Positions 157-51,300 of a stretch of 64,000 nucleotides of DNA are shown in pieces; positions within the stretch are counted from its first letter, which is position 1, and every line of letters begins with the position of its first letter. The stretch comes from Perna viridis (Eukaryota). The DNA is taken from the NCBI GenBank assembly GCA_037379345.1, contig CM074516.1, forward strand, positions 34,881,626 through 34,945,625. The letters run 5' to 3'. The notes under the pieces are model-generated. The model had not been told where the DNA came from. It saw only the letters and a program-made list of their open reading frames with translations, and did no database searches. A program made the position numbers and the translations under genes.

Positions 157-363
157 CATTAATCCAAACCGGTCTTTGTGAACCACATCTCCCTGTACCA
201 GTTGGAGAAGTAGCAAGACTGTAGTTTCCCTCAAATCTGTACCACCCCTTGCTATAACTGGTGGACTCACAGCTATGTGAAGTTATTGAGTAACTGTAGT
301 CAGAATGACGAGATTTGTCATACTCTATAGAAGTGTAATTACTACAGGGGTCTGCCTGGGCTT
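157..363 (-). CDS. Exon E70, D8C N-half (D35, partial domain)
   Basis: 207 nt, AG/GT; EAQADPCSNY...RPVWING. Confidence 0.9.
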
Positions 364-9300: not shown

Positions 9301-12300
9301 AATGTACAGTACAAGCTACCCAAACAAACTGGTGGTTGGTATAATATAGAGGTTAAAGTCATAATAATTGACAATTATAGACCGGTTTGTAGTAAGTTGG
9401 TTAGCATGCCCAATATATACTTCCACGAGGTAGAACTTGGGTAGAACAAAAGAATTTTCCTCGCGGAAGTGTATATAGAGCATGCTCTATGTATGCTCAT
9501 TGACTACCCCAACGTTAGCACAAAAGGGTCTATTCAAACTTCAACTACATTGTCCTTAAAATCACACAGGTGTTCTGTGGTATATAAGTATGAAACATTG
9601 GTATAATGCAGGGCAGATTTATACCTAAAGAGCTATTTAAATTATTCAATAACCTACATAGATTTGTATTGAAATTGGTACTGGTCTATTTCAACAAGCT
9701 GCAAACATACCTTAATTATATCTGCCAAACAATACCATGTGATTTTAGATACATGTAGATGTCAAACATACCTGTACAATATCTGCCACACATTCCATTA
9801 TTATTTATGTACATAATGTTATAGGATCCACATTTCTTGACAGGAACAGTCCAGCTGGAGGAACATGGTGATCCAGAATCAGATCCCTTACAGGCCTTCA
9901 CATATGATATTTCTCCATCAGTTACTGGTAATGATCCTGGAAGGACATATTAGTATTTAAACCACCCTGTGTCAACTCCTATATTCAGTTTAAAGACTGG
10001 CAGCATCTGATTGACTAAAATTTGTGAGAACCAGAAACAAACTTCATTATGATATATAATATCTCAAAGTAGAAACACTTCAAGCAAAAAAGACCCATAT
10101 TGAACATTCATTCTTTTGCAAACTTTCCATTCAACATCAACTGTATTTGAGAATCAATATACAAAACAAGCAATTCAAATGGCTTCACTAGACCACAAAG
10201 TTCATAACTTTTATTGGTCTTTAGAATAAATGTATCTAACCTTTCATCCAGATGGGATCACTAGACCCACACTGTCCATACCCCACTGGACTCATTGCTG
10301 GTCCATAGTCTCCATCAAACCTGTACCATCCTTTGGAGTAGTAATCACAATTAGAACCTCCCCAGTAGTTATAATAGTCCATGTGTCTGGTGGAGTCATA
10401 CTCTATCATGGTGTAGTTATTACATGGGTCCTCTTGTGGTTCTGTATGATGTAAAGTTAAGCAATCAGCAGTATACAATACTTGGATGAAGTATCTTTAG
10501 AAATAATAAATATAGAACAACAGCAATGTAAAACATAAAGCAATCCAAGTCATGTAACATGCCTGCATGACCTTGACCTTTGGACTACAACCTTAAAATT
10601 CAATAAGGTATTAGACTTTTATATTAAGTTAATTCAAAATTCATTCATGGATGTTGATGCTACCCTGTTTAAATGGTGTTAAGGTCAGTTGGAAAACTGT
10701 ACTACATCTCTGTGCTACATCATTAAGAAAAAATCAAGATACTATGACTAGAGGATGGTAAGGGTTATTTTTAGCAACATGTCTGGTCTTTTTATTCTCT
10801 GTTTGATTTTCAATTATCAATTCTTTATATATTTTGTGTTTACATGAAATTAAGTGACTCTGCATTTTTCTTAAAAGAAAAAGCTAATTCTTAAAATTTT
10901 ATTTTTCTCACTGATATATTGACATTGTTTCTTGCACTTCATAGATTTTTATTTTTCATGATATTTTTTGTAGATGTTTATTTCACATGATTCCATTTTA
11001 CAACCCATTTAAGGAATGCTTCTAATTTTTTAACAGGTTATATGAAAAAAAACTGTTACTTTGCAGTATATAAAAAGTGTAAACTGGCCCAAACCAGGTA
11101 ATTTCTTACAACCCATTAGCTTCACCATTAATAAAAAGTATACACTGGCCCAAATTAGGTTATATTTGTATAACCAGCTAAACAACTAAAAACATTCCAT
11201 ATTAAACTAATTTTTAATGGTTGATAGTCCAAATATTGAAAACTGTCCCATAATTTTGACATTATTTTGTTAAGGATTATTTGAATCATGGAGTGCGTCA
11301 AATTGACATTAATAACTTTTAAGTACCAAGCCAGTTTATACAAAATAACCTGGTTTGCTGAAAGAGAAGCCAGCAATCAGAAGGCACTTATCAAATTAAT
11401 TTTTAAACAAATACCTTATATTACCACTTAAAATTCCCTGGATTATACAGAATTCTTACCTGTACAATATTTGCCACAGCCTTGGAAGTATGGTGTCAGA
11501 TGAGCCACATTAAATCCATCACAATGCATGACATAGGTATCCCATTTATGTTCACAGTCGGAATCATTGCCAACCTTGCACACCCTCATGTGTGACATCT
11601 CAGCATATTCTGTGGGATAGGTACCTAGAAGGGAAATTTAACAGAATAATTGCTCATCTCACAAATCCTCATGTTGGACAGTTTAGCATACTCAGGGTAG
11701 GTACAAAATAAAATATTGTAATATGCATGAGGTCGCCTTGTTATTGTTAACGTGATAATATAATCTTAAATTTGGGAATAATTCAGGTTCATTCAAATAT
11801 GCCCCAAGCACAAGTCCAAAAAACACTATTTGTGATGTATATTTTTGGGGTTCTGCGTTAAGAAGAGTCATATTGCATGTGAAAAAACATTACCTATGAA
11901 GAGTACTGACAAGTTTGATTTATTATCCAAATGTCAAATATTGATTATAGTATATTTTTAACCAAGTAGCATGACACCGTTTTCAATGTTTATGAATGAT
12001 GTCATTTCAGGTTTTGACAATGGCATATCATAAGTTTTAAGGTTTAAGATATATGTTCACCTTGATATTGTTTAATGCAAATACTGACTTCTAGAATGAC
12101 AGCAGTTTTGATATTTATTCCGATATTTCAAACCTAAAAATGTTTGGGCCCATGGACTATTTGTAGTGATGTATCTCACCACTTCACATAGCAACAGCGT
12201 TAATGGAAACCCTAGCTGGTTAATTTAAACTTTATAGCACAAGAACAAGATCATGGAAGAGAAGCACAGGGATCGTTAAACAATTAGGCAATAACATCAG

Positions 12301-15300
12301 GGACATATTATGAGCCAAGGTTCCTTTCTTTGCTTATGTGTATGAATAATTTCAAAGGTATAAATACGGAGTAAATTTGCCAAAGATGGCAGATTGCATT
12401 TGGCTTCAGTGCTGTCAACATCATTTGAAATACAAGGAAACAGCCATGGGAGGACTTAATGCTGCAAGAAACCATCATTAATGCAATCTCCCACCACACA
12501 GATACTGTCGTTTGACATTTATTGCATTTTACAATATCATACAATATTTTCTGCCAATATAGGAGCACCACCGGAGGAATTTAATGGGAACCATACTGAG
12601 TGAAATACAAGCATTATTTATGGTGGATAAGAAATAAGAAGGGACTTCAGGATGCATGGTTAATATTTTTAAGGATTGTTTGATGTGGAAAAGGAACTAG
12701 GAACTATTAACTTTAGTTGGTGAATACCAGCGCTGAAAGCTAATTAGTATTATAATAGGACTAGGATGAGGCAACACAACAAGTCACATAAGGTGTACAT
12801 TTTATTAAAGACACAGATACTGCTATCACTAGGGGTCAATATCGTTATATATCCTGCTGAATAGAAAACACATTTATTGTAATAAATTTATCATTCATTT
12901 TTAATTGGTTTGTTCTACATGCAGATTCCTACAGTATACATTGAAACATAATATTTAAAACTGAGAGTCATCTTATCAATCGGACCACTCACCATACCTG
13001 TTACAATATAAAATAGAATCATTCCCCAATAGATTTAGATCTGCTTCATAATCATAGGTTTCAATGCCTGTTAATCAATATACCCATGGTAAAATCAGAA
13101 CATACTTACATACAACAATAACAAAACTTCCTGAATAAAAAAAAATTATTTGAGGGAAAGGTTTATATCTTCTAATTACCGTCAAACCAGATAGGATATA
13201 GGGATCCACAACTCAACTGTTCTGGAGGTCGATTCAGGACATTCTCATAATTCTCAAATCTGTACCAATTATCACTACTGATCTCCCCATTAGAGTAACC
13301 ATAGTAACCATAGTGATACCAATATTCATTGTCACATGATTCATACTCTCCTGATTGAAGGATATGATCTACTGTCCTCTCAAAACTACTGGGTACAACA
13401 TGGTGGTTGTGACAAGGGTAGTCCCATGATGACGAATTGGTTGTATTCCTGGACTCTGTAATTAAGAAAGATGATAAATAGATTATAGTATTATATAACC
13501 TCCCAAGCTTCACTGAGCAGGAAATCAAATACAAGGCCCAAATTACCATAGTGATAATATTCAAAGAAAAAAATTCATTAACCCAATGATAATGCAGCTG
13601 TAACCATATAATAATTGCATTAATGTAGATATCAAATAAAGAAAAAATGTCACTGATGCCTAAAGTTCAACCCCCTAAAGATACATCATCCCTACAAATA
13701 CAATAAAACTGACTTAGCATCCTTGCAGATGTACAAGCAAACCTAGACAGTATAAAATCCCTGCAGATGTACTAAAACCTAGACAGTATATCATCCATGC
13801 AGATGTACTCAAACCTAGACAGTATATCAGCCCTGCAGATATACTCAAACAAACTTAGACAGTATATGATCCCTTCGGACCTAAACAGAATATCATCCTT
13901 GCAGATGTACTTAAACAAACCTAGACAGTATATGATCCCTGCGGACCTAAACAGAATATCATCCCTGCTGATGTACTCAAACCTAGACAGTATATCAGCC
14001 CTGTAGATGTACTCAAACCTAAACAGAATATCATCCTTGCAGATGTACTTAAACAAACTTAGACAGTATATGATCCCTGCGGACCTAAACAGAATATCAT
14101 CCTTGCAGATGTACTTAAACAAACTTAGACAGTATATGATCCCTGCGGACCTAAACAGAATATCATCCTTGCAGATGTACTTAAACAAACCTAGACAGTA
14201 TATGATCCCTGCAGACCTAGACAGCATATCATCCACACAAATATACTCAAACAGACCTAGACAGTATATCATCCACACAGATATACTCAAACAGACTTAG
14301 ACAGTATATCATCACCGCAGACCTAGACAGTATATCATCCACACAGATATACTCAAACAGACCTAGACAGTATATCATCACCGCAGACCTAGACAGTGTA
14401 TCATCCACACAGATATACTCAAACAGACCTAGACAGTATATCATCTCCGCAGACCTAGACAGCATATCATCCACACAAATATACTCAAACAGACCTAGAT
14501 AGTATATCATCACCCCAGACCTAGACAGCATATCATCCACACAGATATACTCAAACAGACCTACACAGTATATCATCCACACAGATATACTCAAACAGAC
14601 CTAGACAGTATATCATCCACACAGATATACTCAAACAAACATATACAGTATATATCATCCCTATAAATATTATAAAACTGACCTAGACAGTATATCATCC
14701 ACACAGATATACTCAAACAAACATATACAGTATATATCATCCCTATAAATATTATAAAACTGACCTAGACAGTATATCATCCACACAGATATACTCAAAC
14801 AAACATATACAGTATATATCATCCCTATTATAAAACTGACCTAGACAGTATGTCCTCTCACACATGTCATCATTACGTAGATACATAATCTCCTCACTAC
14901 CACATTTCATCACTGGTACACTATAACTCCAGGAACAAGGGGAACTATCTGATGAATGACAAGCTCTGAGGTATGAAATTTCTCCATCAATTGTAGGGAG
15001 GCCTCCTGCAAAACAATAAAGTATATCTATGCAGTACTGGCAGCTACTATAGTTAAAGTTTTATAAATTAAAAATTGTGAACTCATATGCAAATTTTTGT
15101 TTTGTGTTTGCCTAATAATGCAGGGGAAATTCAGAATTAGTGAATTTTGAGGGGGGAGATTACTGTACAAGTATCAATTTTTGTAATAATTTTTTTGTAT
15201 TTTCTTGGTGAAGTAATAAGTGTAAATAGTAGTACCTGCCAATTGGATTATTAACACTATGAATTACTTATCATTATTCAAAACTGTGAAAACCGATACC

Positions 15301-18300
15301 TGTGAACATATTCACTAAACAAATCCATGATAAGAAGCAACCAATGAAGTTAATATATGTTTTCTAGTACATGACTTCCTGAAAATATTGAACAACATTC
15401 TATACCTGACATTGAATAGAAATCAGAAATATGTAATATTAATAAGTAAGAGTTACCTTTCAGCCAGAAAGGACTAGATGATCCACATTGTCCTGGACCT
15501 ACAGGAGTTGTGGCTAGTTTATAGTCTCCTTCCATACCATACCAGCCTTTAGGTCTATATGAATGGCAATAATCTGAGCTATAGGGATCATAATTATCTG
15601 CATGTGTTGTGTTGTCATATGGTATCACAGTATAGTTATCACACGGGTCCACAGCCAGCTCTACAATAAGGAGTCTTAATACAATTATCAAAGTTTTAAA
15701 CATTAAGAATCCTAACTACATGACATTGTAAAACATTAACCTATACATTTTATGGAAATCAAATAATCATTAAAAAGGTTATGTAAAGCATGGCATCCAT
15801 TAATCATGTGAACATTTTGTTCTGGGATCTTGACCTTTGACCTTGAACAAAGAGCAGTCACACCTCTCTTCAGAGACCTTCCAAGGGAAACAGGTGGTCT
15901 CCTTACACAGGTTCATAGACCTTTCTACAGAGACCTTTCAAGGGAGACAGTTGGTCTTCTTACACAGGTTAAAAGAACTATCCTCAGAGACCTTCCAAGG
16001 GAGACAGTTGGTCTTCTTACAGAGGTTAATTTTACATAAAAATGCACAACATAATGATACCAAAATTAATAAGGCACAAAACACTGCATTTCTTATATTT
16101 ACAACTGATAACTGTCTTGCCAAAAGAAAAGAACAAACACCTTTAAAAACCTTACCCATACAATAACGTCCACACTCGTTAATATCAGGAGTGAGGTATG
16201 CCACATTAGTGTCGTTACATTTCATGACGTAGACATCCCAGCTGTGTTCACATTCAGATGTATTAGTGTTCATACATGCCTGCATTAAATTCATTTCTCC
16301 GTATGAACTTGGATAGGTACCTAAAACAGTAAAAACATATTTTTTTATATTTTTACTGTAGAAGAAAAATTTAAGTTCTTTTTCTTTGTGGATTTTATGA
16401 GTGCGAAAACAAATCCCACAATACAACATCCCTATAGGAAGATTAATACAAAATATCAGCAACCTGTGAGTGACTCAGAAAAAATGTGACAAAAAGTTTG
16501 TATATTACCACTGTACAAGGAAAATTTAAATTTTTGGCAAACTGGAAATAGATGTCATACGAGTAGGAAAATGCATCCCACAATTCAGTATACACATACA
16601 TGTATAAAGCTTTGTCTGGATTATCAACACTCAGTAATTTACAGAAGCTGAGAATTTTGTTATGAAAAATGTGTTACTGAATGAGGGAATGACAGAATGA
16701 TACAGGTAAAACAGTATACCCCTCTTCCTAGGAAGCTTGGGAAAACAATATCAAACTATACATGTATAAGTGTTAGCACAAGTCTGCATCATCTTAATTT
16801 CTCCATAAGATCTTGAGTAAATACCTATAAAGTTTTCCTTGGATTTCAAAATGTTTGAAGTTTCATTCTGGTATTTGCATAATGTGAAAAAGTTTTGTTA
16901 GGATATGAAACTTTTTCCATGGTTTAAGGGTTTAACTTCTCAAATATTCAATTTCTTATACTGGACCTTTGAAGTTTTCAAATGATTATTAAAGATGACT
17001 CAAGAGTCATCTTGACTTATCTTCAGCTGTTTACTCACCATTGAACCAGATTGGATACCATGATCCGCAATCTCCTGGTTCAACTGACTCAGTCAGAAAA
17101 TTTTCACCATTACTAAATCTATACCATCCTTGTGTAGAAACTGTGTCAGAAGAACTGTAGCCATGGTTACTATCACAGTAGAACCAATCATCATACTGAA
17201 GTGTGTACTTAGAAGATCTCTCAAAACTACTGGGTATTTTTCTATAGTCGCTATACATGTTATCACTGTATCTATAATCATAGCAAGGAGTGTCCCAAGT
17301 CTGAGTCCAAACTGGTTCCTTGGGTTCTGTAAAAATATAATCAATAAATTAAAAAAGGTTTTTTGCTTTTAGGAAATACCTCCCTCTTTTTTAGAAACTA
17401 AGTGTTTACTTTTATAACAAAGACACCCTGTGATTAATAAAATGGCCTTTGAACCCTAAAACTATTTTTGAATGGCCTCATATAAAAAAATTGCTCATTT
17501 ATACTGTTAACAAACTTCTGGAATCTGCATGTCTTGTTTTGTTTTCACTTTCTGTTTACTTTTATATTGCCAGAGTATAGACTATTTTGCTCTGCCTGTG
17601 TACTATGTTGTTTTGCCGCCAGTTGCAGCCAGCCCTGTTGTGTGAGGGTTTCCTTGTCGTTCATTGAAGACCCATAAGTGGCCTTGAGCTGACATTTTTC
17701 ATCCCTGTGGGTTTTTTTTTCTTTAACATATTCACCATATCCACTCTCCTTATATTTATTACATTTTAAGTTAAAAATTAATTTTTGCAATTTTTGCAAA
17801 GACAAAACCCTTGCAAAAAAATCTGAAAACCCTTACCAATCAATGGTTTTAACCACTCGACTACAGGTAGATCTTAAAAAATAAATCTCAGCAAACTTAA
17901 ATTCAATCCTTATAAGACAAAATAGGCATATGTGGTTTACAATAGGAATTAAATACTTAAAGTACCTTAGTATCATAATTCAATACAACAGTACATACCC
18001 AGACAATATCTGCCACACATTCCTCTTTGTTTCAAGTAGAAGATGTCAAAATCTCCACACTTCATCACAGGGACACTCCAGTTATACTGACAAGGATTAG
18101 AACCGGATACTTCACAGGCAAACATATAGTCTATTGTATTCTCCTTGGTTGGGAAGTTTCCTGAAAAATGTATGTTTAGATTGTAATCATTCATGGAGAG
18201 AATGAAAGGATGACTTTTAATTTTCCTTAAGAAGTCTGAAATATTCCTGATGTCCTTGGATATCAATGTGTTCAGATGCCATTTGCCATCATCAGATACA

Positions 18301-21300
18301 ACTGTTACTAACTAGAACTGGTGATATCATTGATTGATACCTCTTACTTGCAAAACACTGACAATTGAAAACTCTGAAGTTGGAGCATCTTCCTTTGCAA
18401 GCATCTGGCAATAATTATCTTACTACATGCACATTTACATAAGACGCCTCAGTCTCTTGTAAAATTTCATGAAAATCTAAAGAATGATTTAGAAATTACA
18501 CTTATAAGTTACCTAGACAGATAACAATTCTTACATATCCTAAAAAAAACTGTTAGCAGGGCATAAAACTATAAACTTTGAGAAAATAAAATAATTTAAG
18601 GAACTTGGGAGCTTGGTTTTCTTTTCTGGATGTATCCAAATGATGGAACAACAGAAAAACAAATTTTAGACAAGTCTTCCCATGTATTTTCAATAGCAAC
18701 TTTAAGTGGTGAAAACCACCAAAGAGGCAACAACAAAAAAAAGCTTTCTGAGTAATCAAAAGACTTAAGTATTTACTATTTTGGATTTAAGTTATACTCT
18801 AGGGTATTTGTCACATTCCCCTGTATCAGTTCTTTTTTACATTGAAGATAGATTAACAGATAGACAGTGGTACACTCTACCTGTCAAAAGATGGGGATAA
18901 AAATACATCAATTCAGAATGCTTTGCATGTCACTATTATATCATGTCCTAACCATTGGTGAAAACAGTCTCTTACAGTTGTAACCTTATGTGACCTTAGG
19001 TCTCAATATATAACTGAAAAATAATTGACTGGAAACACACTGAAGCAAACATACTTAGTACACATGTCATCATCCAGTATGATATCCAATTTAATTCATG
19101 TGACAACAGCCTAACATACCTTTAACTAGATCAAACCATGGTAACTACAATGATTGCCACTCAGAAGTTTGCTTTCTACCCATGATGTAATTAATTACCT
19201 TTCATCCAGATAGGATTGTAGTAGCCACAATGATTTGGACCCAGTGGTTTGTTTTGTGGTCTATAGTCTCCTTCAAACTTATACCATCCATCATTTAACC
19301 AATCACAGCTGTACATGTACATGTAGTCTGTCACATTATCAGCATGTCGACTCTCATCGTAGTCAATAATGGTGAAGTTAGAACATGGATCAATGTCTTG
19401 TTCTAAAATATTAAGAAACAAGTTAATTACTTTTATCCTATGCTTTGCTTCACATCAAATAACATTTATTTTATATCTATTACTTGTTAAACTATGTTCA
19501 AACAATGACACTCCAACAGTATTATAAACAAAAGGTTAGTTACAAGCACTGACATACTTATAACACAATTTCATTCTGTAAGTTTGCATTTTACAGTATT
19601 CATACCTATACAATATCTGCCACAGTCATACTGGTATGGTACAGGTTTTAAATGAGCTACATTAAAATCACCACAATTCATGACAGAAACATTCCAGCTG
19701 TGATAACAGTCAGAATCATTGACCACCATACAGGCTGTCAGGTTAGATAACTCTGCGTACTGCGTAGGATAAACACCATCTGGAATGAAACAGAAATTAG
19801 AGTCAGAATCATTGACAATCATACTAGCTGTCAAGTTAGAAAACTCTCCATACTGAGTAGGATAAACAACACCTGGAATGAAATAAAAATTATACTCAGA
19901 ATCATTGACCACCATTCAGGCTGTTAAGTTAGATAACTCTTTGCACTGGATAGGATATTTACCACCTGGTATAAAATAGAAATAAAAGATAAAATTGTCA
20001 TAGTGGCTAAGTTGTGGAATTTGAATCAGATTGCCTGACACACCTATATCAGCTTTAGCCTTCCATATAAAATCTGAAAGATTTTCCATCAAGCAAAACT
20101 TGGCCTTCCTCCTCCTAAACCCGGTGAATATATTCAACCTTTAAAAATAAGCTAATTTCCCTACAAACACCATGATAAGAAGTATAATCACTATTAGTTT
20201 TTTTTATAGTTTGTTAATGACCCCTGCTGATCCATAAGTCATCGGGTGAGGCAGTATCTTGTACCCTACTGAACAAAAGTGGAGGGGGTCTATTAATTCA
20301 AACAGGAAATGAGTGACACAAATCTCCTAGTCTTCATCATTCTATGGTGAAATTATTTTCATAAAATAAGTTACATAGAATCCACTACACAAGGATGTTT
20401 TAAGAAATGTTACTTCTGAATACAGGTTAAGACATGTTTTACTGTAATGACATTCTACAACCCATGAAAAAACTGAATTTTTTTGTCACAACAAGACTTC
20501 ATCAGTTTAATAATAAGACTGTATTTTTCTTACCATCAAGCCATATTGGAGACATAGTCCCACAGTCTCCAGATTTGACCGGACGTGTGGGAATATCTTC
20601 TCCGCCATTAAATCTGTACCAATCTTCATAGTAAATATCATGATTATCTATATGGTTCCGATTATCACAGTATTGTCTGTCTCCATCCTGTCTGGTGTAG
20701 TTTACACTCCTCTCAAACTGGCTTGATACTACACGATGATTGTGACAAGGTACATCCCATGGGATATCTCCAGGTTCTGTAATTTAAAGATACTACCCAG
20801 TATATTTTTGAACTAGAGAATGTTGATTTGGTGATCAGAGATAACTGTCTATTTCAGTTTTTTTTTATGTGCAAAAGAGTAATTACCCCTAAATGATAAT
20901 TGTACCATACCACAGACCATAACCAAACTTAACTAGTATAATATAGTTCATTGTCTTGTGTTTTTTTTTTCTAATTGCATTGTCTGAAAATAAAAGTGAA
21001 ATGAAGAAATGATGAACACAAAAACAAGATGACCTTCATAAAAAATCTGACTTTTACAAAAATGTCTTAAAGTTTGGGCATGGAAATATCAGTATCTATG
21101 GTTACCTAGACAGTATCGTCCACAGTTGCCTGAGGATTGTAGATAATAAATGTTGTAGTCTCCACATTTCATTGTTGGTATGTCCCAGGTATAGTAACAA
21201 TGTGTATAAGAATACATTGAGTCTGACTCGCAGGCTTTCACATACTTTATCTCTTGATCAACTGTTGGTAGGGTGTCTGGAATAAAAAAAATATACTCAA

Positions 21301-39300: not shown

Positions 39301-42300
39301 TACAGAATTCATACCTATACAATATCTGCCGCAATCATATTCTCGTGGTACTGGTTTTAAATGAGCCACATTAAAATCTCCACAATTCATAACTGAAACA
39401 TTCCAGCTGTGATAACAGTCAGAATCATTGACCACCATACAGGCTGTCAAGTTAGATAACTCTCCATACTGGGTAGGATAAATACCATCTGAAAAAATTA
39501 ATGTAGTTTTTGTTGAAAATAAAGCTCATTATTGAAAAAATACTTCAAACGTCATTTTAGCAATGACATTCTTTTAAAAGATAAGTCATATCATGACATT
39601 ACATTTGTCTTTCTTGAGACCTTTTATTCCAAGGATTAATGATGACTTTCTAGAACTGAAAAGACTGTGAGCACAGTTCCCTAAAAGAAAACCTCTGCTC
39701 TCAAATTTTATTGTCTATATTGTCAAAATATAAACAAAATTATCAAACTGGAAGTCGAATACCACTTATGGCATACCTAACTAAAGCTTCTGTTAAAATA
39801 TCAACTGTTTGTGATGAATTCCTGATAATTCCCCCATCTGCTTGTGGCTTATACTAAAATTTGACCGTGTATACTATACAAGTTAGCTGGGTCCTACTTT
39901 TCTAACCCGCAGTCAATAAATAAAAATTGTTTATATCAGTCTAAAATGATAATGTTCTTTTTTCCTTACCATCAAGCCATATTGGTGATGTTGTTCCACA
40001 TTGTCCAGATTTTACCGGACGTGTGGGAATATCTTCTCCGCCATTAAATCTGTACCAATATTCATAGTAAATGTCATGATTATCTATATGGTTCTGATTA
40101 TCACAGTATTGTCTGTCTCCATCCTGTCTGGTATAGTTAACACTCCTCTCAAACTGGCTCGATACTACTTGGTGATTGTGACAAGGTACATCCCATGGAA
40201 TATCACCAGGCTCTGTAATACAGAAAATAAAACTACATCACCATTTTGTCTGTTGTAGTTAATGCTCAAACTGCTTATTATTGACATGAAAAGTTAAATC
40301 CTTAAATTAATTGAATGGATTTTGGCTCAGTGGTCAACTTCAGATCCTCTATGATTTGGTTATTTTATCGACTTCTTGGGCGACTAGAAATTTTTTATAT
40401 CACATCATGTGATAATGTGATATAAAGAAGTAATATAAAAAAAATTGGCCATTGTGATTGGTTGTTGTGTGATTGTGTGGCATTGCCTATAAAATCTGAT
40501 TGATCAAATGCAATGTTGTTCTCCAGGAACGATTGGAGTGTCATAGACAGACGATTGATAGGACTCCTGCCATGACAGATGATCAATAAGACTCCTGCCA
40601 TGACAGACAATCATTAGGACTCCTGCTATGACAGATGACCAATAGGACTCCCGCCATGATAGACGATCGATAGGACTCCTGCCATGACAGATGCCCAATT
40701 ATTCCAATAGAATCTTAGACTTAAGTTATCACTACAGAAAGTTTATGGTTGTCATGAACTCGTGAATCGTTACCGTGTATCCATCTGCACCATGAGAACT
40801 GATTTGTTTAACATGTCATAGTTTTCCTTTCCTATTTTGTCTACCCCAGACTTGACTTGTTATGAGCAACTCGGCGGGTGTTTATAGAAAAGCAGAGAAT
40901 GCTTTCCCTACCAGTGCATCTGGTCCATGCTCCCAGTTTTTAGTGGAGTCCAAGTTGCTCTTTTAATTTTGTATCTTTGTACTTTGTACCTGCAAAGGTT
41001 TGTTGTGAGGATGTTGAAATTGAATAACTTGCGTTGATAATTTAGGATATTCAACTTTTACTGGTACTTGATATGAAACCTATAAATTCATTATTAACAC
41101 TTCGATGATTCATATCAAATATAATTTTACTAAAACAATGAAATAAATATAACATATTAGTTGAATCTGCAGTTAAGGTAAATGATTGATTCTCACTTCC
41201 GAAAAGGTATTTACCTAGACAGTATCGCCCACAGTTGCCTGATGATTGTAGATAATAAATGCTGTAGTCTCCACATTTCATTGTTGGTATATCCCAGGTA
41301 TAGTAACAATGTGTATAAGAATACATGTCACTAGATTCACAGGCCTTTACATACTTTAGTTCTCCATCTACTGAGGGGAGGGTGTCTGGAATAAAAAGAG
41401 GAACAATTATGGCCAGGTAGAGAATCAATAAATATTACAATACATAAGAGTCTAATTCACAGGCTTTTAATACTTCAACAGGGAAATAAGTGTTTCATAT
41501 TCTGTCAATTTACAATTATAATGTCTTTCAATAAGACAATTGTACTATATGAATGAAAGTCAATTTATTAACATTTTTTTGTACCAACTTTGTGAAACAC
41601 TCGTTGGTACCAATAATGTGCCAAACATCTGCCATCAGCAATACAATGTTACTTTAAACTTTGATGCAGTGTTATCTAACATAAATCTTGACACCTACAC
41701 TTGTAGTTAAGTAGCAATCCATCTAAGAATCATGCAAAATGTGATTCATGGTTAGAAAGCCTACATATTTTTATTTTTGATATTTTGTTTTGAATTTTAT
41801 AGTTAACAGAAATTAATATGTGGCTTTTCATATACTCCATGCTCTTGGGAGATAAAAATTATAGAGAACATACTGAAGAATTCAAAATTAAAGGAGATAA
41901 CTCTGTAAATGACGCTAAAATACAAGAGAAACTATTGGATTTTCAATGTGGATTATCTCTGAAGAGCAGACAGATTGGAATGTATGATAATACATTTCAT
42001 CATATAGATCCACAAAACAACTTAATATCAAAAATAAAAATGTAAAACTTTTTAGATGAATCACATATTACAGAATTCGCATGATTCTTACAAAGACTGC
42101 TACTTAAGAACAAAATTATTGGGTTTAATATGGCTTGGCTTCAGTGAGTGAAGTTACAAGCATTGTCTTCCTTGGCATACCCCCAACTGTACAGGAAGTT
42201 GATATCAGAAAACATGCCAAAAAGTTAACAACATATGCCCTTCTACAAATTTTAAAGCCAAACACCTAATTTGAAATTGATCCATCCATTGGGAGCTAAG

Positions 42301-45300
42301 ATCATTACAACAAAATTTTGAAGAACAGACAAGGTAATTCCAATATAGCACCTGCATACTGAATGGGGGTATGAGAATACATAGGTGGGTAATACAAAGC
42401 ATGGTATCAGTCTGTTGTTTAAAATATGACTCAGTCACATCAAAAGGCATAATGAGACATGAGTATGTATACACTTATAAAAAACTCCATTGCTGACTGT
42501 TTACTCCAGGTTTAACATCAAGGTTGTAAAGAAGAGTTATAACAACCTCCTTGGTGAGGATATAAATACAAAATAGTATCCATATCTTACCATTAATCCA
42601 GACAGTACTGTATGACCCACATGTTCCTGTACCAGTAGGAGAAGTAGCCAGACTGTAGTTTCCTTCAAATTTATACCATCCAGGACTAAAATTGGTAGAT
42701 TCACAGTGGTGTGATGTTATAGTATGAGCGTAATCTGAATGACGAGATTTGTCGTACTCTATTGAAGTGTAGTTATTACATGGGTCTGCCTGTGGCTCTA
42801 AAATTTAATAAGACCCTTTGCAGTTAGAAGAGTTGCCAGATGCTATATGATTAAGCCATTACTTTGTATTGATATAATACCAGTATAATTTAACTATTTG
42901 CATTACAAAAACAAAAGCAAACTAAGGAATGTTAAATATAGGTTATTTTTAGTACCCTTAGTTTAACACAAAGCCCATAACTAGTTCTTTCTTACGATGG
43001 TATTGAACTGCAGAAATATTATATAATGCATTTTTAAATGAAAATAGAAAAGTTGAAAAGTAAGCTTTTTACATAAAAGTCATTTAATAAAGCATAGAAA
43101 CCAAAAGTTACTTAAGTTCTAAAGTAGTTACCATGGAAACTTACCAGTGCAATAACGTCCACATCCACTGAAGTAGGAATTCAAATAAAAAGCATTGTAT
43201 CCATGGCAATTCATTACATATATATCCCAAGATTGTTCACAGTTAGAATCATTCCCCACCTTACAGGCTTTCATCACAGCTGTCTCTCCATACTCAGTGG
43301 GATAGGTACCTAAAGAGAAACAAAATAAAGTTAGAATCATTCCCCCCCTTCAGGTTTTCATCACAATTGTCTCTCCATACTCAGTGGGGTAGGTTCCTAC
43401 AGAGACACAAAATAAAGTTAGAATCATTTCCCACCTTACTGGCTTTCATTACAGCTGTCTCTCCATACTCAATGTGATAGGTCATACAGAGACACAAAAT
43501 AAAGTTAGAATCATTCCCAACATTATAGGCTTTCATCAAAGCTGTCTCTCCATACTTAGAGGGATAGGTACCTACAGAGAAACAAAATAAACCCCAAACA
43601 AAATTATGCCCAACTCTTTAGCGTTCCATGATGTTCGTGTTACTTACATATATTTAAGAAAAATATTACCTGTAATGCAAGATTTTTCAAAGATTATTTG
43701 ATGCAATTCAAAAATTATTCAAAAGAACAAAACGTCAAATCTTACCTTGAGCCCATATAGGATACCATGACCCACACTGTCCTTGATCTGGGGTTGAGGT
43801 CAGGAGATTTTCATGGCTGCCAAATCTGTACCATTGTGTCATGTCAATTTCAACCATGTAACCATTGTAATTATAGTAACCATCACATTTGCCATTATCC
43901 CCTTGCTGTAACCTATTATTGACCAATCGGTTGATGTTACTATTTAAAGTGGAGTATGACCAACATGGTGTGGTCCAGGATCTTTCCCAAGTTGTATTCA
44001 AAGCCTCTGTAATAATAAAACCAAAACTGTCTCTTTAAAAAAAATTTGGGGTGCTGTCGTCATCTGACCAATAGCCAGAAACAAAATTTTAATTCAGTCA
44101 TCAGACATTGTGCCCTATTTTGTTAAGTATATGAATTGAGTAATATTAATAATGGTAATAATAACCTATACAGTTGAACCTCTATGTGGCACTCGGAAGA
44201 GTCAAAATCTCAGATAACTCGAACTAGTTTCAAAGTCCAGCAAAACTCCTCTTTCTTTAATACAATTTTACCTTGGATGACTCAAACTCTTGGAAAACTC
44301 CAGGTTTTTAATCAGTATCCTTGATAGGACTTTGAGGTTAATTAATCCTGACCTCTTGACAAATAAGACAAATAATTAGTCAGCAAACTGATTGCTTTAT
44401 TAAAAACCATGATTGAAGTATCTTTCTACAATGATTAGCGTGGCTTTTGAAATTATTTGTTGACACTCTTTGATTTGTGTATTTAATTAATCAAAAATAG
44501 CGTGTGTAGTGAAAAGAAACCAATTTTATTAATCACATATCAAAATTCACACTATCGGTGATATTGGAGATTTTGGTAAAAATAAAAAGAAGATTACAGA
44601 TGAATTGTAATGGTATCTGAACATTTAATTAAACATCAAACAGTTGATAATAAGTGTATTTCAATGACTACATTCATTTCGCTAGTGAACCTGAAATTTA
44701 ATCAAAGTAATGTAAAGTATATGGTTTGGTGATACTCCTTATTGTGAGTCATACAAAATATGAACTATGTAGAAAAAATAGCAAGGATTTTTTCCTAAAA
44801 CACTTGGTGCATTCAGTACTTAAAACATGATATACAACACACAAAATATCTTCCGATACAGAATGCAAGCCATCACGAAGTACCCTATAAAATGAAGTAT
44901 GAGTACATGTGGAATGCAAGCCACCACGAAGTACCCTATAAAGTGAAGTATGAGTACATGTGGAGCGCAAGCCACCACAAAGTACCCAATAAAGTGAAAT
45001 ATGAGTACATGTGGAACGCAAGCCATCATGGAGTACCCTATAAAGTGAAGTATGAGTACATGTGGAGCGCAAGCCACCACGAAGTACCCTATAAAGTGCA
45101 GTATGAGTACATGTGGAACACAAGCCACCACGAAGTACCCTATAAAGTGAAGTATGAGTACTTGTGGAATGCAAGCCACCACATAGTACCCTATAAAGTG
45201 AAGTATGAGTACATGTGGAACACAAGCCACCACGAAGTACCCTATAAAGTGAAGTATGAGTACATGTACAAACATAACAAATGATGCAGAAACAATCATT

Positions 45301-48300
45301 GACCAAACTATTTCCAGGTTATGCTCGACCTCAGATGACTCGAACCTTGAATAACTGAAGCATTTTTGCTTGGTCCCTTTAATTTCAACTTAATGAGGTA
45401 TCTGCAACTCATCCCCTGAGGTTTACAATGAATTATGTTATAGGCACCCCTTACCTTGACAATATCTGCCGCACACCCCTGAGGTTTAAAATGCACTATG
45501 TCAAAGGCACCCCTTTCCTTGACAATATCTGCCACACATCACCTGAGGTTTAAGATGCATTATGTTAAAAGCACCCCTTACCTAGACAATATCTGCCACT
45601 CATTCCCTGAGGTTTACAATGCATTATGTTATAGGCACCCCTTACCTTGACAATATCTGCCACACATCCCCTGAGGTTTAAGATGCATTATGTTAAAGGC
45701 ACCCCTTATCTAGACAATATCTGCCACTCATTCCCTGAGGTTTACAATGCATTATGTTATAGGCACCCCTTACCTTGACAATATCTGCCACACATCCCCT
45801 GAGGTTTAAGATGCATGATGTTAAAGGAGCCACATTTCTTTACAGGAACAGTCCAGCTGTAAGAACAGGGGTTTGAGCTTCCACCCTGACAGGCTTTCAT
45901 GTATGTTATCTCTTGGTCTATGCCTGGTAAATGACCTGCAAACAATAAAATAAGAAGATATAATATTAGTAGAAATATAAAAAGTGTCCAAGTCCATACA
46001 GATATTTAGGTCAAAGGCCAATGTGCTGTAAGACCTTATAGATACATAGAACATACACATTTTTTTGCAGAATTTGTAAATAAACTCAAAATCATCAGAA
46101 ATAGATTGATTTTTACTTAAAAAAAATGGCATACAATTAAAAAATAATGTTGCATAAAAGACAATTTTAAAATATTTTAATTATTAATATTGATAGTATT
46201 GATTGCAAAAGTATAAAATATGCTTAAATATATTTTAATCTTGAATTAAAATCCTATTCAATTCCACGCTTTGTTACACCTATCTGATACCAAATTCTCA
46301 TGTTTAGATTCAGTAAACCAGTTTATACTTAGTGAGATTCTAAAGACCATATGGCTAACAGTAATGCAGTACAGGTCATTTTGAAACAGTAATCAAGGGA
46401 ACCAAGGTTTTAGCAGAAATCAGAAGAATGTAATCCAGGGACAAACACCAGACATGAAATATATACATATGTTCCTGACTATACAAGTACCAGCCAAATA
46501 CCTATACAGTATAAGAGTTCATATCATACCTCAGTATATAAACATCAATACAAAATTTTCTACAGTAAAATTGCTATTTTTCTCCTTTTTCATTGTTCGT
46601 CTATTGAGCAGTCCATAGTTTTCAGACTATTGACCGGCAATGTCAACTGCTTTCGTGGATTTTTCGTTCCGTCACCAGATTGGACTAAAGTTCTATGTTT
46701 ATTCGGAACACTGACTTCACCCTCTCTTAATGAAAACCCCGAAATTATCTTGCACTTTAACACAGATGAAGTTGAATGTTTGCTAGACAATATTCAAATG
46801 TGTACATTGTTGCTGTTCTTTATCTTACAGACACCATGTAATTGATGTTGAAGGCTGCAAATTCAAATTCCTATGAATTACTGGTGAAAAGGTCAATGAG
46901 ACAACATTCAGATCAAAATATTGCCAAAAGATGCATGGTTTTCTGGGTTTTAAACATTTTGAGGTGATGAGGGGAAAATATCAGTGACATTCAAATTGAA
47001 AATATTGTAAAAAACGTTTTTCTGGGTTATCATTTTGAGATGATCATTCAACTATGAACAATGGAGGGACATGGAGTAAACGTATTACAAGTCTAATGTT
47101 TTCGGTATAATAAAATACTTAAAGACTGGGTATTCAGGAAATAGGAAGTTTATATTTATATAAATATATCAAATCACACTTCTTCTATAAATAACCTAAA
47201 GGTTACATAAAAACAACCAACAATGATACCAAAATGATTTAATGATTTTAGTACCCTCACCACTGGACAAAATTTTAGGCTGAATGATACTACTACACAA
47301 AAATCCGGAAAACTGGTTGTTATACAGAATAATGGAAGGACAGACTGATGACCAAGAGTGAAACTATATGCCCTGACCACTTCATGGCAAGGGCATAAAA
47401 AAGAAACCAAACTCTCTAAACCTTAACAACACTCCAAGAATTAAAAAAAATTACAACCTTGTAATATATTTTTGAATCCGCTTCTGACTATGAGGCTACA
47501 TCAAAACAACCAGAAGGGAATTTTAAGCTGAATGATAACAGTACACAAAAAAACTTGGATTGAAAGAGTGCAAGTCTTGAGTTTTACCAAAAGGTTCACA
47601 CATTCTTTTAAACAGTTGAATCTTTAAGCATTGATTTATCTTCTGTTACTGTAAACATATCAATATTTTTAGCAATGATTTCAGGTATTCTTCATAACCC
47701 ATAATAGTTGGTCACAAACCTTTCATCCAGATAGGTTCAGATGTACCACACTGTCCATTTCCTACAGGTGTCATGGCTGGTTGGTAATCTCCCTCAAATC
47801 TGTACCATCCATCAGAGTAGGAATACGATTCACAGCCATACCCACCCATGTAATTATAGAAGTCCATGTGTCGGGTGTGGTCATATTCTATCAGGGTATA
47901 GTTATCACATGGATCCTCTGCTGGTTCTAAAAATGCAGCAAGTAAATTAACAATTATAGCAATAAAATTTGGAAAAAAATTACTTATACATGTCTCTTTC
48001 CTTTATGGTCCTACAGACCACTAATTATAAAACTGTTTATAGAGGACAAGTCCACATACAAGTAATCAATAAGAATTTGACCTCTGACCTAAGAAGCAGC
48101 CAGAGCCTGATTTTAGTTTGACAGGAACTGTTACTGTTTCACAGAGTAAGGATCTTTACTAGTGTCATATTTTTTTAACAAAAACAAAATAGTTATCAGT
48201 TTACAACTCACATCTTAAAGGTTTGTAAATTTATGAAGAAAAATAAATTCTAGTTGATGTAAAACTGTAAAAGGCATAATTATTCATAAAAATATCAGTA

Positions 48301-51300
48301 TATTCAACTTTGTCATCTTACAGATTAGATCTGCATCATATTACTATAGTATTTTTTTCTATATGAGAATAGAATATGAGTTCTAATTAACACAGATGTT
48401 ATATAATTTGTTTCAGAAAGAGTGTTATGTGGAATATCAAACTCTCTCATTAGAATTATCAAGATATTCAACATAATGTATTTACTATCAAATTCCTATG
48501 TAGAAATTATTCCAAGGGTGATATAGGAAAATCATAACTGGAGAAATGTTGAATACTGCCATAAATATCAATGCTGAAAATAGAAGAAATGATGTGTCCA
48601 CAGGACATAGATGCCCCAGCCATCACTAAAAATTCAAGGAATATCAACAGGAGGTAGATGCGGCAATGAGCTCACCCACAACACAATTAATCATACTGAA
48701 GCTTTAGAACAAATCTGAGAACTTTGAAAGTTTTTGCAAAACTGAACCTAATAGCTTACATATTGAACAATGATGCACACCAAATCCTCAACCATTCACA
48801 GGAAAGGTTTCTCAGTTTTATGGGATGAAAATTTTTGAAATCCTTATATACAGCAACAAAAAAACTTACAGCAAACAAAAACTTGATGTATCCATCACTG
48901 AGCTTAAAAAGTTTACCAACTCTACAACCCATTAAGCTGAAGCAATAAACCAAATCCAAATCATTTCCACGAAGAGCTGCCAATTTTCATGCAACAAAAG
49001 TTATGGGGAAAAACTGACAAGTCAGGGATATAAAAAAACCCATTACAGTTATTTTTGGAAATGAAAAACTAACCAGTTCAAAGCATTGTATTTATACATC
49101 AATAAACAGAAAAACATGAACCCAAATATTTCTGAATTTACTGTCCACTTTTTCTAAGAATACTCACTAGTACAATATTTGCCACAGGGTTCATAATAAT
49201 CTAAGAATCTGAGTTGAGCCACATTATAATCCCCACAATTCATTACAGGCACTGACCAGGTTTCATTACAGTTAGTATCATTTCCAACCATACAGGCTGT
49301 CAAGTTATACTTCTCTGCATACTCAGTGGGGTACTGACCTGGAATAGTTAAATATATCCATTATTATAGTAACTACATGCACTCCATCAAGATGCCACCC
49401 ACAATACTATTTAATACTCAATATCCAGGCATTTTTGTTCCAATGATGTAAGAATGTTACCTTCAATATATTAGAAATAATGAATAGCTTTGCCAAGAGC
49501 AGCATAGTACAACTGCAGCATATTGAACTCTGTTCATTTGGGGAAAGTGTCAATACAAATTAAGTTTTGACACACAGAAACATAGTGACTTACAGTTCAT
49601 TATGGACACAAAAACTGGTTTGGACAAAATACTGCACAAAATGTGAACTTCAATTAAGGAGGTAGACCAAGGGTAAGAAACATAACTCTTGAAATCAGCG
49701 ATATATTTGTATAATATTCAATTTCACCAAGGCCTGTCAAGCTTTCATGTGAAAAAGAATGAAATCTGTCCATGTTACTTTGATGCTTACAGGAGACTGA
49801 TATAAAATGCTGAATACAAACATTCCAATGATTTGAAAGAGTTGTGTCCCTTACCATAGATCTACATCCTTAAGTTGAAAGAAATTCTGCTTTATGGGTG
49901 TTCATCAAAGTCCTTTGCTTTCAATCCCTATAATTTTGAAAACTGTAAGAAATATCTGAAATCTCACCGAAAAAACACAGGCAGGGATTTTCATAAGGAA
50001 TCTAATGACCAATATTAAAAATTTTCAAAATCAGACCAAAAACAAAAAACTTTATTTTTTGGGTGAATCCCACCCCCACTCTGACAACTTACTACCATAA
50101 GAGACAACTGAAATTTGAATGAAAAATGCAGGCAGAGATTTTCATGAGTCATCTAATATCTAAATTTTAACTAAATCAGACCTCAAATAAAAAAGTTGAT
50201 TTTTTGGGATACAGCCTGTATTGTACCCTTACAACTTTGAAACTGTAAAAGATACGACTATTCTATAAGAAAAAACTCTTATAACAGAATTTCAAAAAGA
50301 ATTACATTGTCGACAGAATAATAAAGAAAACAATAAACTATTTCTAGCCATTCTAATTAAAACACATATTTCTCCTTTAACCCCTTATTTTCAAAGGAGA
50401 TAAGGCAAAAGGCTAAAAATAACTATCTGTCCCTCCTCCATGTCCCTAGGAACAATGTATATAAATTTCAAAAACAGTTGATAAGTTTTACTCAAGTTAT
50501 CATAAAAAGACACAGATGACAAAGATGTCCTTAAAATTTCTCTATGTTGTATAAAAAGATCAAATTCATTTCTATACAGTTTTCTTTATAGTCCAATGAA
50601 CAGATCTGATATAAGACCCATGACTATTCCTTAATTTTGTGTTACATACAACAAGAAATTTCATAATCAATGTTACTTAGTTACAAACTGACTGGGGCAA
50701 TTATAAGATTTGCATACTGTAAACTCAAGCATGACAGCCGAGAGATGTATGTCAGGATAATTACTTAACTTATATTTTTGTTGTAGCTATATAAATAATG
50801 GTTTATTTTCCTTTCCATTCTGAAGAAGCCTTAGGCATAAATTGATACCTCATAAAGAACACAAGACGGGAATAATCAAGGTGTCTAATATATACATGTA
50901 TATATCTTCACAACAGCTCGATAAACTTGGTAGTTTATTGCTCTGTGGTGTCGAAGTCAGGGTCCTTGTTCTTGGTAAGTATACTTCTGTATGAATTAAG
51001 AATCATCCACCCCTTACCTCTTTCTCATCAGATATATAAAATGAAACATAAGTGCTATGATACCTATTTATTAACTACAAACTATCAAATCATTTATGTA
51101 CATTAGAATAACTTGGGACTACAAGCTGCATAAACTAATAAAAACCAAACAAGAGATACCCCCTTTTTCCATGAACTAACCAATCAAAGATCAAAACTTG
51201 AGGGATGAGATAAAAATGGGTATGAAAATATACACTTTTTATTGAGAAAGTCCAAAGTTATAGAGAATAATATAAGAAAATCATAAAAATAAGTAGAAAT

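Follow-up and report, generated by a model that had tools for sequence, protein, structure and literature searches.

How can the exons of one gene stay almost identical when the introns between them share nothing that can be aligned? This question is raised by a stretch of 64,000 nt from Perna viridis (GenBank assembly GCA_037379345.1, contig CM074516.1, positions 34,881,626 to 34,945,625; hereafter the window, whose coordinates are used throughout), which carries part of a giant gene of tandem D8C domains (UMOD/GP2-type). The gene is read from the minus strand, as are all exons and introns discussed below. An original prediction, made from the letters of the window alone, had noted near-identical exons inside unalignable introns between 9772 and 49338 and proposed recurrent short-tract gene conversion anchored on exons. 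Our computational follow-up leads to a related answer: the exons have probably been kept alike by DNA-level ectopic, i.e. non-allelic and intragenic, gene conversion that is anchored in exons. Re-homogenisation by exon-anchored conversion after an old duplication passed every within-genome test applied, namely the calibration of intron decay, the heterogeneity of synonymous divergence, switches of the nearest copy, and a mosaic exon.

Near-identical exons between unalignable introns

Exons were located by tblastn with peptides from the window itself, followed by splice-site placement. This model is independent of the original prediction and reproduced its exon numbering (E; intron In follows exon En). 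The window exons alternate between first-half exons, either of type A (201–210 nt) or of type C (243–288 nt), and second-half exons of type B (162–174 nt), one such pair making up one D8C domain. Superimposed on this alternation is a higher-order repeat of 24 exons (ca. 20 kb) that runs through the gene, so that exon k resembles exon k+24 for k = 16–45. In one 4.1-kb tract the two copies are 99% identical including their introns; it is treated separately below.

The exon counts made by eye in the original prediction are borne out. E26 (38797–39000) and E50 (19199–19402), both 204 nt long, differ at 6 of 201 in-frame sites, five of them synonymous and one nonsynonymous, with a synonymous divergence (Ks) of 0.166 and a nonsynonymous divergence (Ka) of 0.006. 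The 162-nt exons E27 (37475–37636) and E51 (17999–18160) likewise show five synonymous and one nonsynonymous difference at 159 in-frame sites (Ks 0.195), and E28 (36721–37008) is 94.4% identical to E52 (17039–17326) over 288 nt (Ks 0.128), against an estimated 94%. This last pair accounts for the only two matches in the whole assembly (723 Mb, 46 contigs). A second close group is formed by E34 (30712–30912) with E58 (10241–10441; 6 of 198 sites, Ks 0.092) and E35 (29949–30113) with E59 (9772–9936; 8 of 162 sites, Ks 0.122). Overall, about 40 exon pairs show graded identities of 81–100%, and copies of the same exon can be 94–100% alike across 20–50 kb. For the 24 pairs outside the tract the pooled Ks is 0.30 (range 0.09–0.67) at a Ka/Ks of 0.15. 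Each per-exon value is based on 30–50 synonymous sites; pooling gives 0.156 for E26–E28 (95% CI 0.09–0.26), 0.107 for E34–E35, 0.122 for E16, and 0.176 for E42 with E44.

The introns present a different picture. A permissive blastn search (word size 7, scores +1/−1) was applied to 30 homologous intron pairs, 25 of which lie outside the tract. In these 25 pairs only 0–27% of the sequence is covered, nearly all of it within the first or last tens of bases, and homology is limited to 0–80 nt at the splice sites. Cover is 0–11% for the introns of the E26–E28 and E34–E35 groups, including 0% for I34/I58, and the 65% found for I20/I44 is due only to exon-echo repeats, tandem echoes of an exon start, that are present in both. 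Smith–Waterman alignment of intron interiors scored homologous pairs no better than non-homologous ones, and the lengths of homologous introns are uncorrelated (rho 0.11). Flanking introns thus differ in length and content and resemble each other only near the splice sites, as had been proposed.

Could transposable elements (TEs) hide an underlying intron homology? I26 (37637–38796, 1160 nt) contains an interspersed repeat of ca. 530 nt (intron nt 281–810, window 37987–38516) with more than 8,000 candidate genomic copies at ca. 83% identity. It is absent from the homologous I50 (18161–19198, 1038 nt), which has two short repeat pieces only. The two introns show 0% cover, and in a comparison with non-homologous controls their Smith–Waterman score comes 19th of 24. 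As nt 1–280 of I26 and nt 1–348 of I50 are single-copy in the genome and nevertheless mutually unalignable, TE load does not explain the loss of alignment, and TE masking does not rescue it beside E26 or E50. The observation that, according to the original prediction, would have spoken for purifying selection alone, introns aligning at about the Ks level once TEs are masked, is not made for this pair.

Calibration of intron decay

The argument depends on whether introns as young as the exons appear to be would still be recognised. Within the 4.1-kb tract introns diverge by 0.8% and synonymous sites by a Ks of 0.013, i.e. introns evolve no faster than synonymous sites. Real introns were then evolved in silico at the indel ratio of the tract (about 5 small indels per 22 substitutions, a quarter of the substitution frequency) and searched by the same procedure. 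Recovery was 98% at a divergence d of 0.2 substitutions per site, 87% at 0.3, and 11% at 0.5. A real positive control is provided by I69 (364–773), which the search aligned with I61 (6600–7030) at 65–68% identity over ca. 330 nt; this pair differs by ca. 33% (d ca. 0.45), and the adjoining exon pair E70/E62 has a proportion of synonymous differences (pS) of 0.39. Given the simulated recovery of only 11% at d = 0.5, unalignable introns imply a divergence of at least about 0.5, which need not amount to saturation. Introns as young as the Ks of E26–E28 or E34–E35 would be obvious in the search. The expectation that low synonymous divergence should leave introns alignable is hence supported, and the comparison of Ks with intron alignability finds Ks values of 0.09–0.3 beside introns with no detectable homology. 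There is no such conflict for exon pairs at Ks 0.4–0.67, which may reflect how old the duplication really is.

A first alternative is that the exons are in fact young. Parts of the repeat would have been duplicated at differing recent times, and the introns rapidly replaced by TE insertion, minisatellite growth and deletion, save for their splice flanks. The interspersed repeats and many exon-echo minisatellites in the introns fit this description, as do the uncorrelated intron lengths and the frequent abrupt end of homology 10–60 nt from the donor. However, complete replacement of all 25 introns would be required within a Ks of 0.1–0.3, at a locus where the tract shows merely about five small indels per 22 substitutions, and hundreds of nucleotides of single-copy, non-repeat intron lie beside E26 and E50 in both copies without aligning. 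Neither can staggered duplications give E25 another nearest copy than E24 and E26 (see below). We regard this history as very improbable.

Heterogeneous divergence and mosaic exons

Synonymous differences are heterogeneous over the 24 pairs outside the tract (chi2 55.3, df 23, p = 2e-4), and this holds within A and C exons alone (p = 0.004). Across pairs, pS tracks the proportion of nonsynonymous differences, pN (rho 0.70, p = 1e-4). Such a correlation is expected if homogenisation was more recent in some exon pairs than in others.

More specific evidence comes from a third copy, located in the flank of the window. Denoting the copies a, b, and c, the nearest paralogue switches from a–b at E24 to a–c at E25 and back to a–b at E26. 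For E24, a and b differ at 19 sites, compared to 30 in each of the two other comparisons. For E25 the third copy is E81 (L005:5969-6142, outside the window and 53 kb away), from which it differs at 6 of 171 sites, compared to 17 of 171 for E25–E49. For E26 the six differences to E50 contrast with 26 and 24, of 201, in the comparisons with the third copy, E82. The switch between E25 and E26 is significant (Fisher test, p = 7e-5) and is mirrored at synonymous sites, with pS values of 0.11 for E25–E81 and 0.34 for E25–E49, but 0.15 for E26–E50 and 0.34 for E26–E82. Members of one and the same exon family are thus near to each other in some pairs and far apart in others, which rules out exon-specific synonymous constraint as the cause.

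E25 (39315–39488) also reveals a three-way mosaic within 400 nt. Its first ca. 120 nt are identical to E81 except for base 1, whereas E49 (19606–19779) stands apart from both within the exon but has homology to E81 in its upstream intron and to E25 in its downstream intron. The grouping thus changes from E49 with E81 in the upstream intron to E25 with E81 at exon nt 6–110, including a run of eight consecutive informative sites at which E25 equals E81 and E49 differs, and to E25 with E49 in the downstream intron. Incongruent four-copy topologies were likewise obtained for E16–E21.

These data bear on a second alternative, in which no conversion took place outside the tract: the duplication would be old (neutral d ca. 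0.5–0.7), purifying selection would hold the exons together through the protein and, in part, through synonymous sites that matter for splicing enhancers or codon use, and the spread in Ks would be sampling noise. Since the intron search becomes insensitive around d = 0.5, unalignable introns demand no more than d ≥ 0.5, which is compatible with the highest exon Ks of 0.6–0.67. The Ka/Ks of 0.15 indicates strong protein constraint, and the run-length tests outside the tract are borderline (see below). Conversely, sampling noise does not account for the heterogeneity of Ks, nor constraint for the parallel behaviour of pS and pN, for the E25 and E26 families being near in one pair and far in another, or for the contradictory groupings of exon and intron flank at E25/E49/E81. 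Moreover, a pS of 0.39 in E70/E62, beside introns that still align at d ca. 0.45, shows that synonymous sites are not strongly held back, and older paralogues reach saturated Ks. Selection without conversion is therefore considered improbable, albeit somewhat less so than a recent origin of the exons.

A polymorphism lends further support to conversion. An ENA contig from an invertebrate gut metagenome (L003, ERZ13706909), representing host DNA of another individual, matches E28 together with 330 nt on either side at 98.7% identity. E28 and E52 differ at 16 sites; the sole exonic single-nucleotide difference of the contig, at 36882, falls on one of these and has the E52 base (chance ca. 0.02). 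The same contig speaks to the concern that the pattern is an artefact of assembly or polishing, with reads of paralogous exons mixed in the consensus and the tract representing a mis-placed second haplotype. The tract divergence of 0.8% is indeed near the difference between individuals (ca. 1%). Yet E28 and the intron sequence on either side of it recur in this independent assembly, which retains 15 of the 16 E28-specific bases, and DNA runs from at least three studies contain 45–88% of the sampled words of 36400–39300. In addition, the ca. 40 pairs of graded identity include mosaics that polishing would not create, and the tract lies in register within two different sets of flanking introns. 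An artefact is thus hardly credible.

Homology length appears to influence which exons stay alike. Synonymous divergence is greater in the short type-B exons than in A and C exons (pS 0.305 vs. 0.206, p = 8e-4); that the shortest class is the most diverged is what a minimal-homology requirement predicts. The relation between exon length and pS across individual pairs (rho = −0.37, p = 0.07) is suggestive only. Synonymous differences amount to 0.156 and 0.133 in the outer sixths of exons and to ca. 0.10 in mid-exon (six-bin test, p = 0.24); it should be noted that this edge-effect test, like the autocorrelation test reported below, was chosen after inspection of the data.

A tract that carries introns

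The exon-restricted pattern, which holds for 25 of the 30 intron pairs, is broken in one place. E36–E41 with their five introns (25025–29119) are 99% identical to E60–E65 with theirs (4229–8319). Leaving out positions 26372–26408 in I39 and their twin at 5576–5612, the copies differ at 4 of 1221 exon sites and 22 of 2829 intron sites. In our own GENECONV-style permutation test on third codon positions the tract stands out by its difference-free runs (p < 0.0005). The only differences near its ends are located inside the end exons, at 25044 and 25047 in E41 and at 29077 in E36, and beyond these the tract is embedded, in register, between two different sets of flanking introns. Ends inside exons would result from repair synthesis that began in one exon and re-annealed in a different one. 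The proposal of recurrent short-tract conversion is accordingly supported as to its anchoring in exons and has to be amended as to length, as tracts are not always short.

DNA or spliced template

The 4.1-kb tract is the only event with a readable template, and since it includes five introns a DNA template is demonstrated at least once. What templated the exon-only events is less directly accessible. The original prediction had put forward the short spill-over of identity into introns as favouring DNA. Ungapped identity falls from ca. 0.9 at the junctions to a background of 0.3 within ca. 20 nt on both sides. At acceptors, unrelated junctions of one exon type are just as similar by virtue of their splice signals. 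At donors, the similarity reaches beyond the null in 14 of 25 cases, over 11–60 nt and mostly at 72–78% identity. Perfect extensions are found for 13 nt after E34/E58, where homology then ends, and for 11 nt after E28/E52, at a null maximum of 8. After E27/E51, where the motif caacagtac(a/g)tac highlighted earlier is confirmed as the first 13 bases of the intron, read on the plus strand, the flank aligns for 49 nt at ca. 78% before homology ends. Most of the spill-over thus corresponds to splice signal or older homology and is a weak argument by itself; the intron-carrying tract is the stronger one. Likewise, the proposed plot of identity against distance from the splice site does show a rapid drop, but a sharp drop at the junction cannot be taken as proof of a cDNA template. 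Heteroduplex with a DNA partner must also stop at the exon edge once the introns are non-homologous, so the two templates predict the same profile.

Exon-only events may still have used RNA. In such a scenario, germline repair templated by the gene's own spliced transcript, or a cDNA of it, would correct runs of exons such as E26–E28 or E34–E35 in one step and leave the introns untouched, the 4.1-kb tract being a separate event at the DNA level. A Ks far below the intron divergence is the criterion by which cDNA donors were inferred in an earlier study (PMC6993855). Neighbouring exons have similar Ks across unalignable introns (0.17/0.20/0.13 for E26–E28, 0.09/0.12 for E34–E35), and RNA-like sequencing runs contain 12–16% of the words of a stretch that is ca. 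20% exon, a hint of expression. The absence of intron sequence from tracts, diagnostic of an RNA or cDNA template, fails for the locus as a whole, not for each event. Several details are nonetheless difficult to reconcile with a spliced template. Low-Ks exons E42 and E44 are interleaved with high-Ks exons E43 and E45 (0.17, 0.42, 0.18, and 0.59 in order), which is not a contiguous spliced tract, and the nearest paralogue switches exon by exon over E24–E26. The perfect 11–13-nt intron extensions follow two recently homogenised exons. The chimeric exon E69 (see below) and the greater divergence of the shortest exon class are further points in favour of DNA. Recombination with cDNA is a classic route to intron loss, and not one intron loss was found in at least 96 exons. 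On balance, a spliced template for the exon-only events is judged unlikely, yet it is the most plausible of the alternatives considered here.

A number of observations count against exon-anchored DNA conversion. Firstly, identity at acceptors ends at the junction and reaches no farther than splice signals explain, as a spliced template would have it. Secondly, neighbouring exons are similar in pS after centring by exon type (lag-1 r = 0.50, p = 0.007), although the raw correlation is nonsignificant (p = 0.19); a spliced template predicts this similarity, independent DNA events do not unless conversion rates vary regionally. Thirdly, the longest difference-free run outside the tract is borderline in the permutation test (p = 0.085), and about half of the exon pairs (Ks 0.3–0.67) are compatible with no conversion at all since the duplication. 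Furthermore, there is no GC-biased signature: the GC content at third codon positions (GC3) is 0.375, against an intron value of 0.316, and shows no correlation with pS (rho −0.09). Such a signature is common in gene conversion and not required for membership in the class. Finally, protein libraries and metagenome contigs yielded no orthologue from another species with which within- and between-species identity could be compared. Exon-wise protein searches returned one ENA contig of the same species or nothing, the best match in a representative library was 41% identical, and the metagenome scan returned nothing.

Proposed course of events

Taking these points together, we consider DNA-level conversion anchored in exons the likeliest account of the locus. 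The 24-exon block of ca. 20 kb would have been duplicated long ago, prior to ca. 0.45 substitutions per site, the level at which the control intron pair still aligns, and its introns would since have lost all detectable similarity. Selection would keep the exons free of indels and thereby preserve them as the only stretches where copies can still pair, which is why conversion would start and end in exons. A paralogous exon would serve as the DNA template for the repair of breaks, with synthesis-dependent strand annealing as the probable pathway. Short repair synthesis would overwrite one exon or part of one, whereas synthesis that runs on to the next exons would bring the donor introns along and generate a tract such as that of 4.1 kb. 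Repetition over time would leave exon pairs of unequal apparent age (Ks 0 to 0.67) amid unalignable introns. While the pattern of divergence, the mosaics and the intron-carrying tract are direct observations, it is from these that we infer by which pathway repair proceeds, in which direction each event went, and that the exon-only events had a DNA rather than a spliced template.

Comparison with known systems

The closest parallel is found in fungal ribosomal-protein paralogues, where coding sequences are homogenised while introns and flanks diverge, and where a cDNA donor has been inferred (Mullis et al., Mol Biol Evol 2020, PMC6993855, citing Evangelisti and Conant 2010). Both systems share a synonymous divergence far below that of introns, homogenisation that stops at coding or exon limits, and conversion recurring over long times. 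The fungal cases, however, concern dispersed two-copy genes with 0–2 introns in yeasts and moulds, whereas here the exons belong to a tandem array within one animal gene, lie 20–53 kb apart and number dozens, and one tract clearly carries introns.

Conversion or unequal crossing-over also homogenises tandem exons, and the repeated protein modules that they encode, within single genes such as Schistosoma SmPoMuc (exon-2 repeats), Coccidioides SOWgp, and the spider silk gene Flag. In these genes, as in most exon–intron repeats so far described within genes, introns are as similar as exons or more so (PMC2576457), i.e. whole units are homogenised. In the mussel gene only the 4.1-kb tract conforms to this mode, and 25 of 30 homologous intron pairs are unalignable. 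The mammalian pairs BMP8A/B, DDX19A/B, and TUBG1/2, with long-lasting interlocus conversion, were chosen for having at least one homogenised intron and show raised GC3 (PMC2720389). They resemble the present locus as old duplicates with mosaic regions of high identity, detected in their case by GENECONV-type tests. They differ from it in that most introns here are not homogenised and a GC signature is absent.

The theory of sequence-dependent conversion, with its minimal homology length for recombination, reportedly goes back to Walsh (1987) and to Teshima and Innan (2004). It predicts that, as neutral DNA drifts or gains indels, conversion persists and maintains itself only in constrained islands. 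The locus would be an unusually clean natural illustration of this principle, with ca. 40 exon islands in three length classes. The locus adds a new and exceptionally rich case to a process that is already known and does not represent a new mechanism or kind; the outcome is the one expected from known conversion biology.

Some consequences are worth pointing out. About 40 exonic homology islands of three length classes in one gene, set between unrelated introns and accompanied by one fresh 4.1-kb tract, constitute a natural experiment on how much homology ectopic repair needs, where tracts start and stop, and whether spliced RNA serves as a template in the animal germline. Should the transcript-templated version be true after all, it would be the first clear multi-exon footprint of such conversion in an animal gene. 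Duplications in arrays of this type that are dated by exon Ks will appear far too young, and trees of the domains will mislead. Giant bivalve repeat genes of such type are also hard to assemble and annotate.

Architecture of the D8C array

The window contains 70 exons of the gene (157–63744), encoding 35 tandem D8C domains, and the gene extends beyond both ends. Every window exon is in phase 1-1 with a length that is a multiple of three, and the joined frame remains open over 4,653 codons. All 34 complete domains carry three cysteines in the first and five in the second exon, in keeping with the eight conserved cysteines of D8C. A first-half exon matches the D8C region of GP2 (7p6r, E = 7e-6) and that of uromodulin (E = 0.05). 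The second-half exon searched alone against the PDB gave no match, and Pfam scans done exon by exon were blank. With ca. 26 additional exons in the fetched flanks, the array comprises at least 96 exons, i.e. ca. 48 domains, over ca. 98 kb, in which no module other than D8C was seen. Vertebrate UMOD/GP2-type proteins have a single D8C beside EGF and ZP modules, unlike the mussel gene, which strings together at least 48.

A homologue from another mussel genome, P0002 (locus L010, CM071711.1:47418491-47521801, GCA_036588685.2), has Pfam PF23283 on record. It was considered as an orthologue and discarded, as it is a different D8C gene of 11 domains. This gene adjoins a VWD gene, and one of its domains is duplicated in tandem over 1.2 kb (L010 exons 83652/84110 and 84857/85307).

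With the flanks included, further copies of array exons come into view, the third being E78–E87 and the fourth E70–E77. The latter is a second copy of E62–E69 (eight exons, four domains), after which the E46-type series resumes from E78 (window 157–2310 and flank segments L004–L006, window coordinates −1104 to −20705). The adjacent E69 (774–938) is chimeric, ending in 55 nt that follow the E61/E37 type with a single difference and depart from E45/E77 at 15–17 sites. The arrangement of E70–E77 looks like the outcome of a four-domain duplication, or of a conversion, with its junction inside E69.

The introns show several minor peculiarities. GC–AG introns, with the donor gcaagt in place of GT–AG, follow E37, E61, and E79 (window 27827–27828, 7029–7030, and in L005). 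I16 (49339–53199) reaches 3.9 kb, several times the length of every other intron in the array; the homologous I40 measures 621 nt. Tandem echoes of 86–88 bp occur upstream of several type-B exons (7127–7371, 22222–22553, 27925–28169, 43241–43661, and 55354–55512); each consists of the last ca. 20 intron bases, the acceptor, and the first ca. 68 exon bases, providing up to four successive decoy acceptors. Minisatellites directly follow exon donors at 45412–45908, 52963–53161, 23275–23874, 44814–45369, and 13744–14828, with units of 64, 116, 50, 51, and 66/40/26 bp, respectively. For those after E19 and E16 at least, tblastn shows a repetition of the 3' end of the preceding exon.

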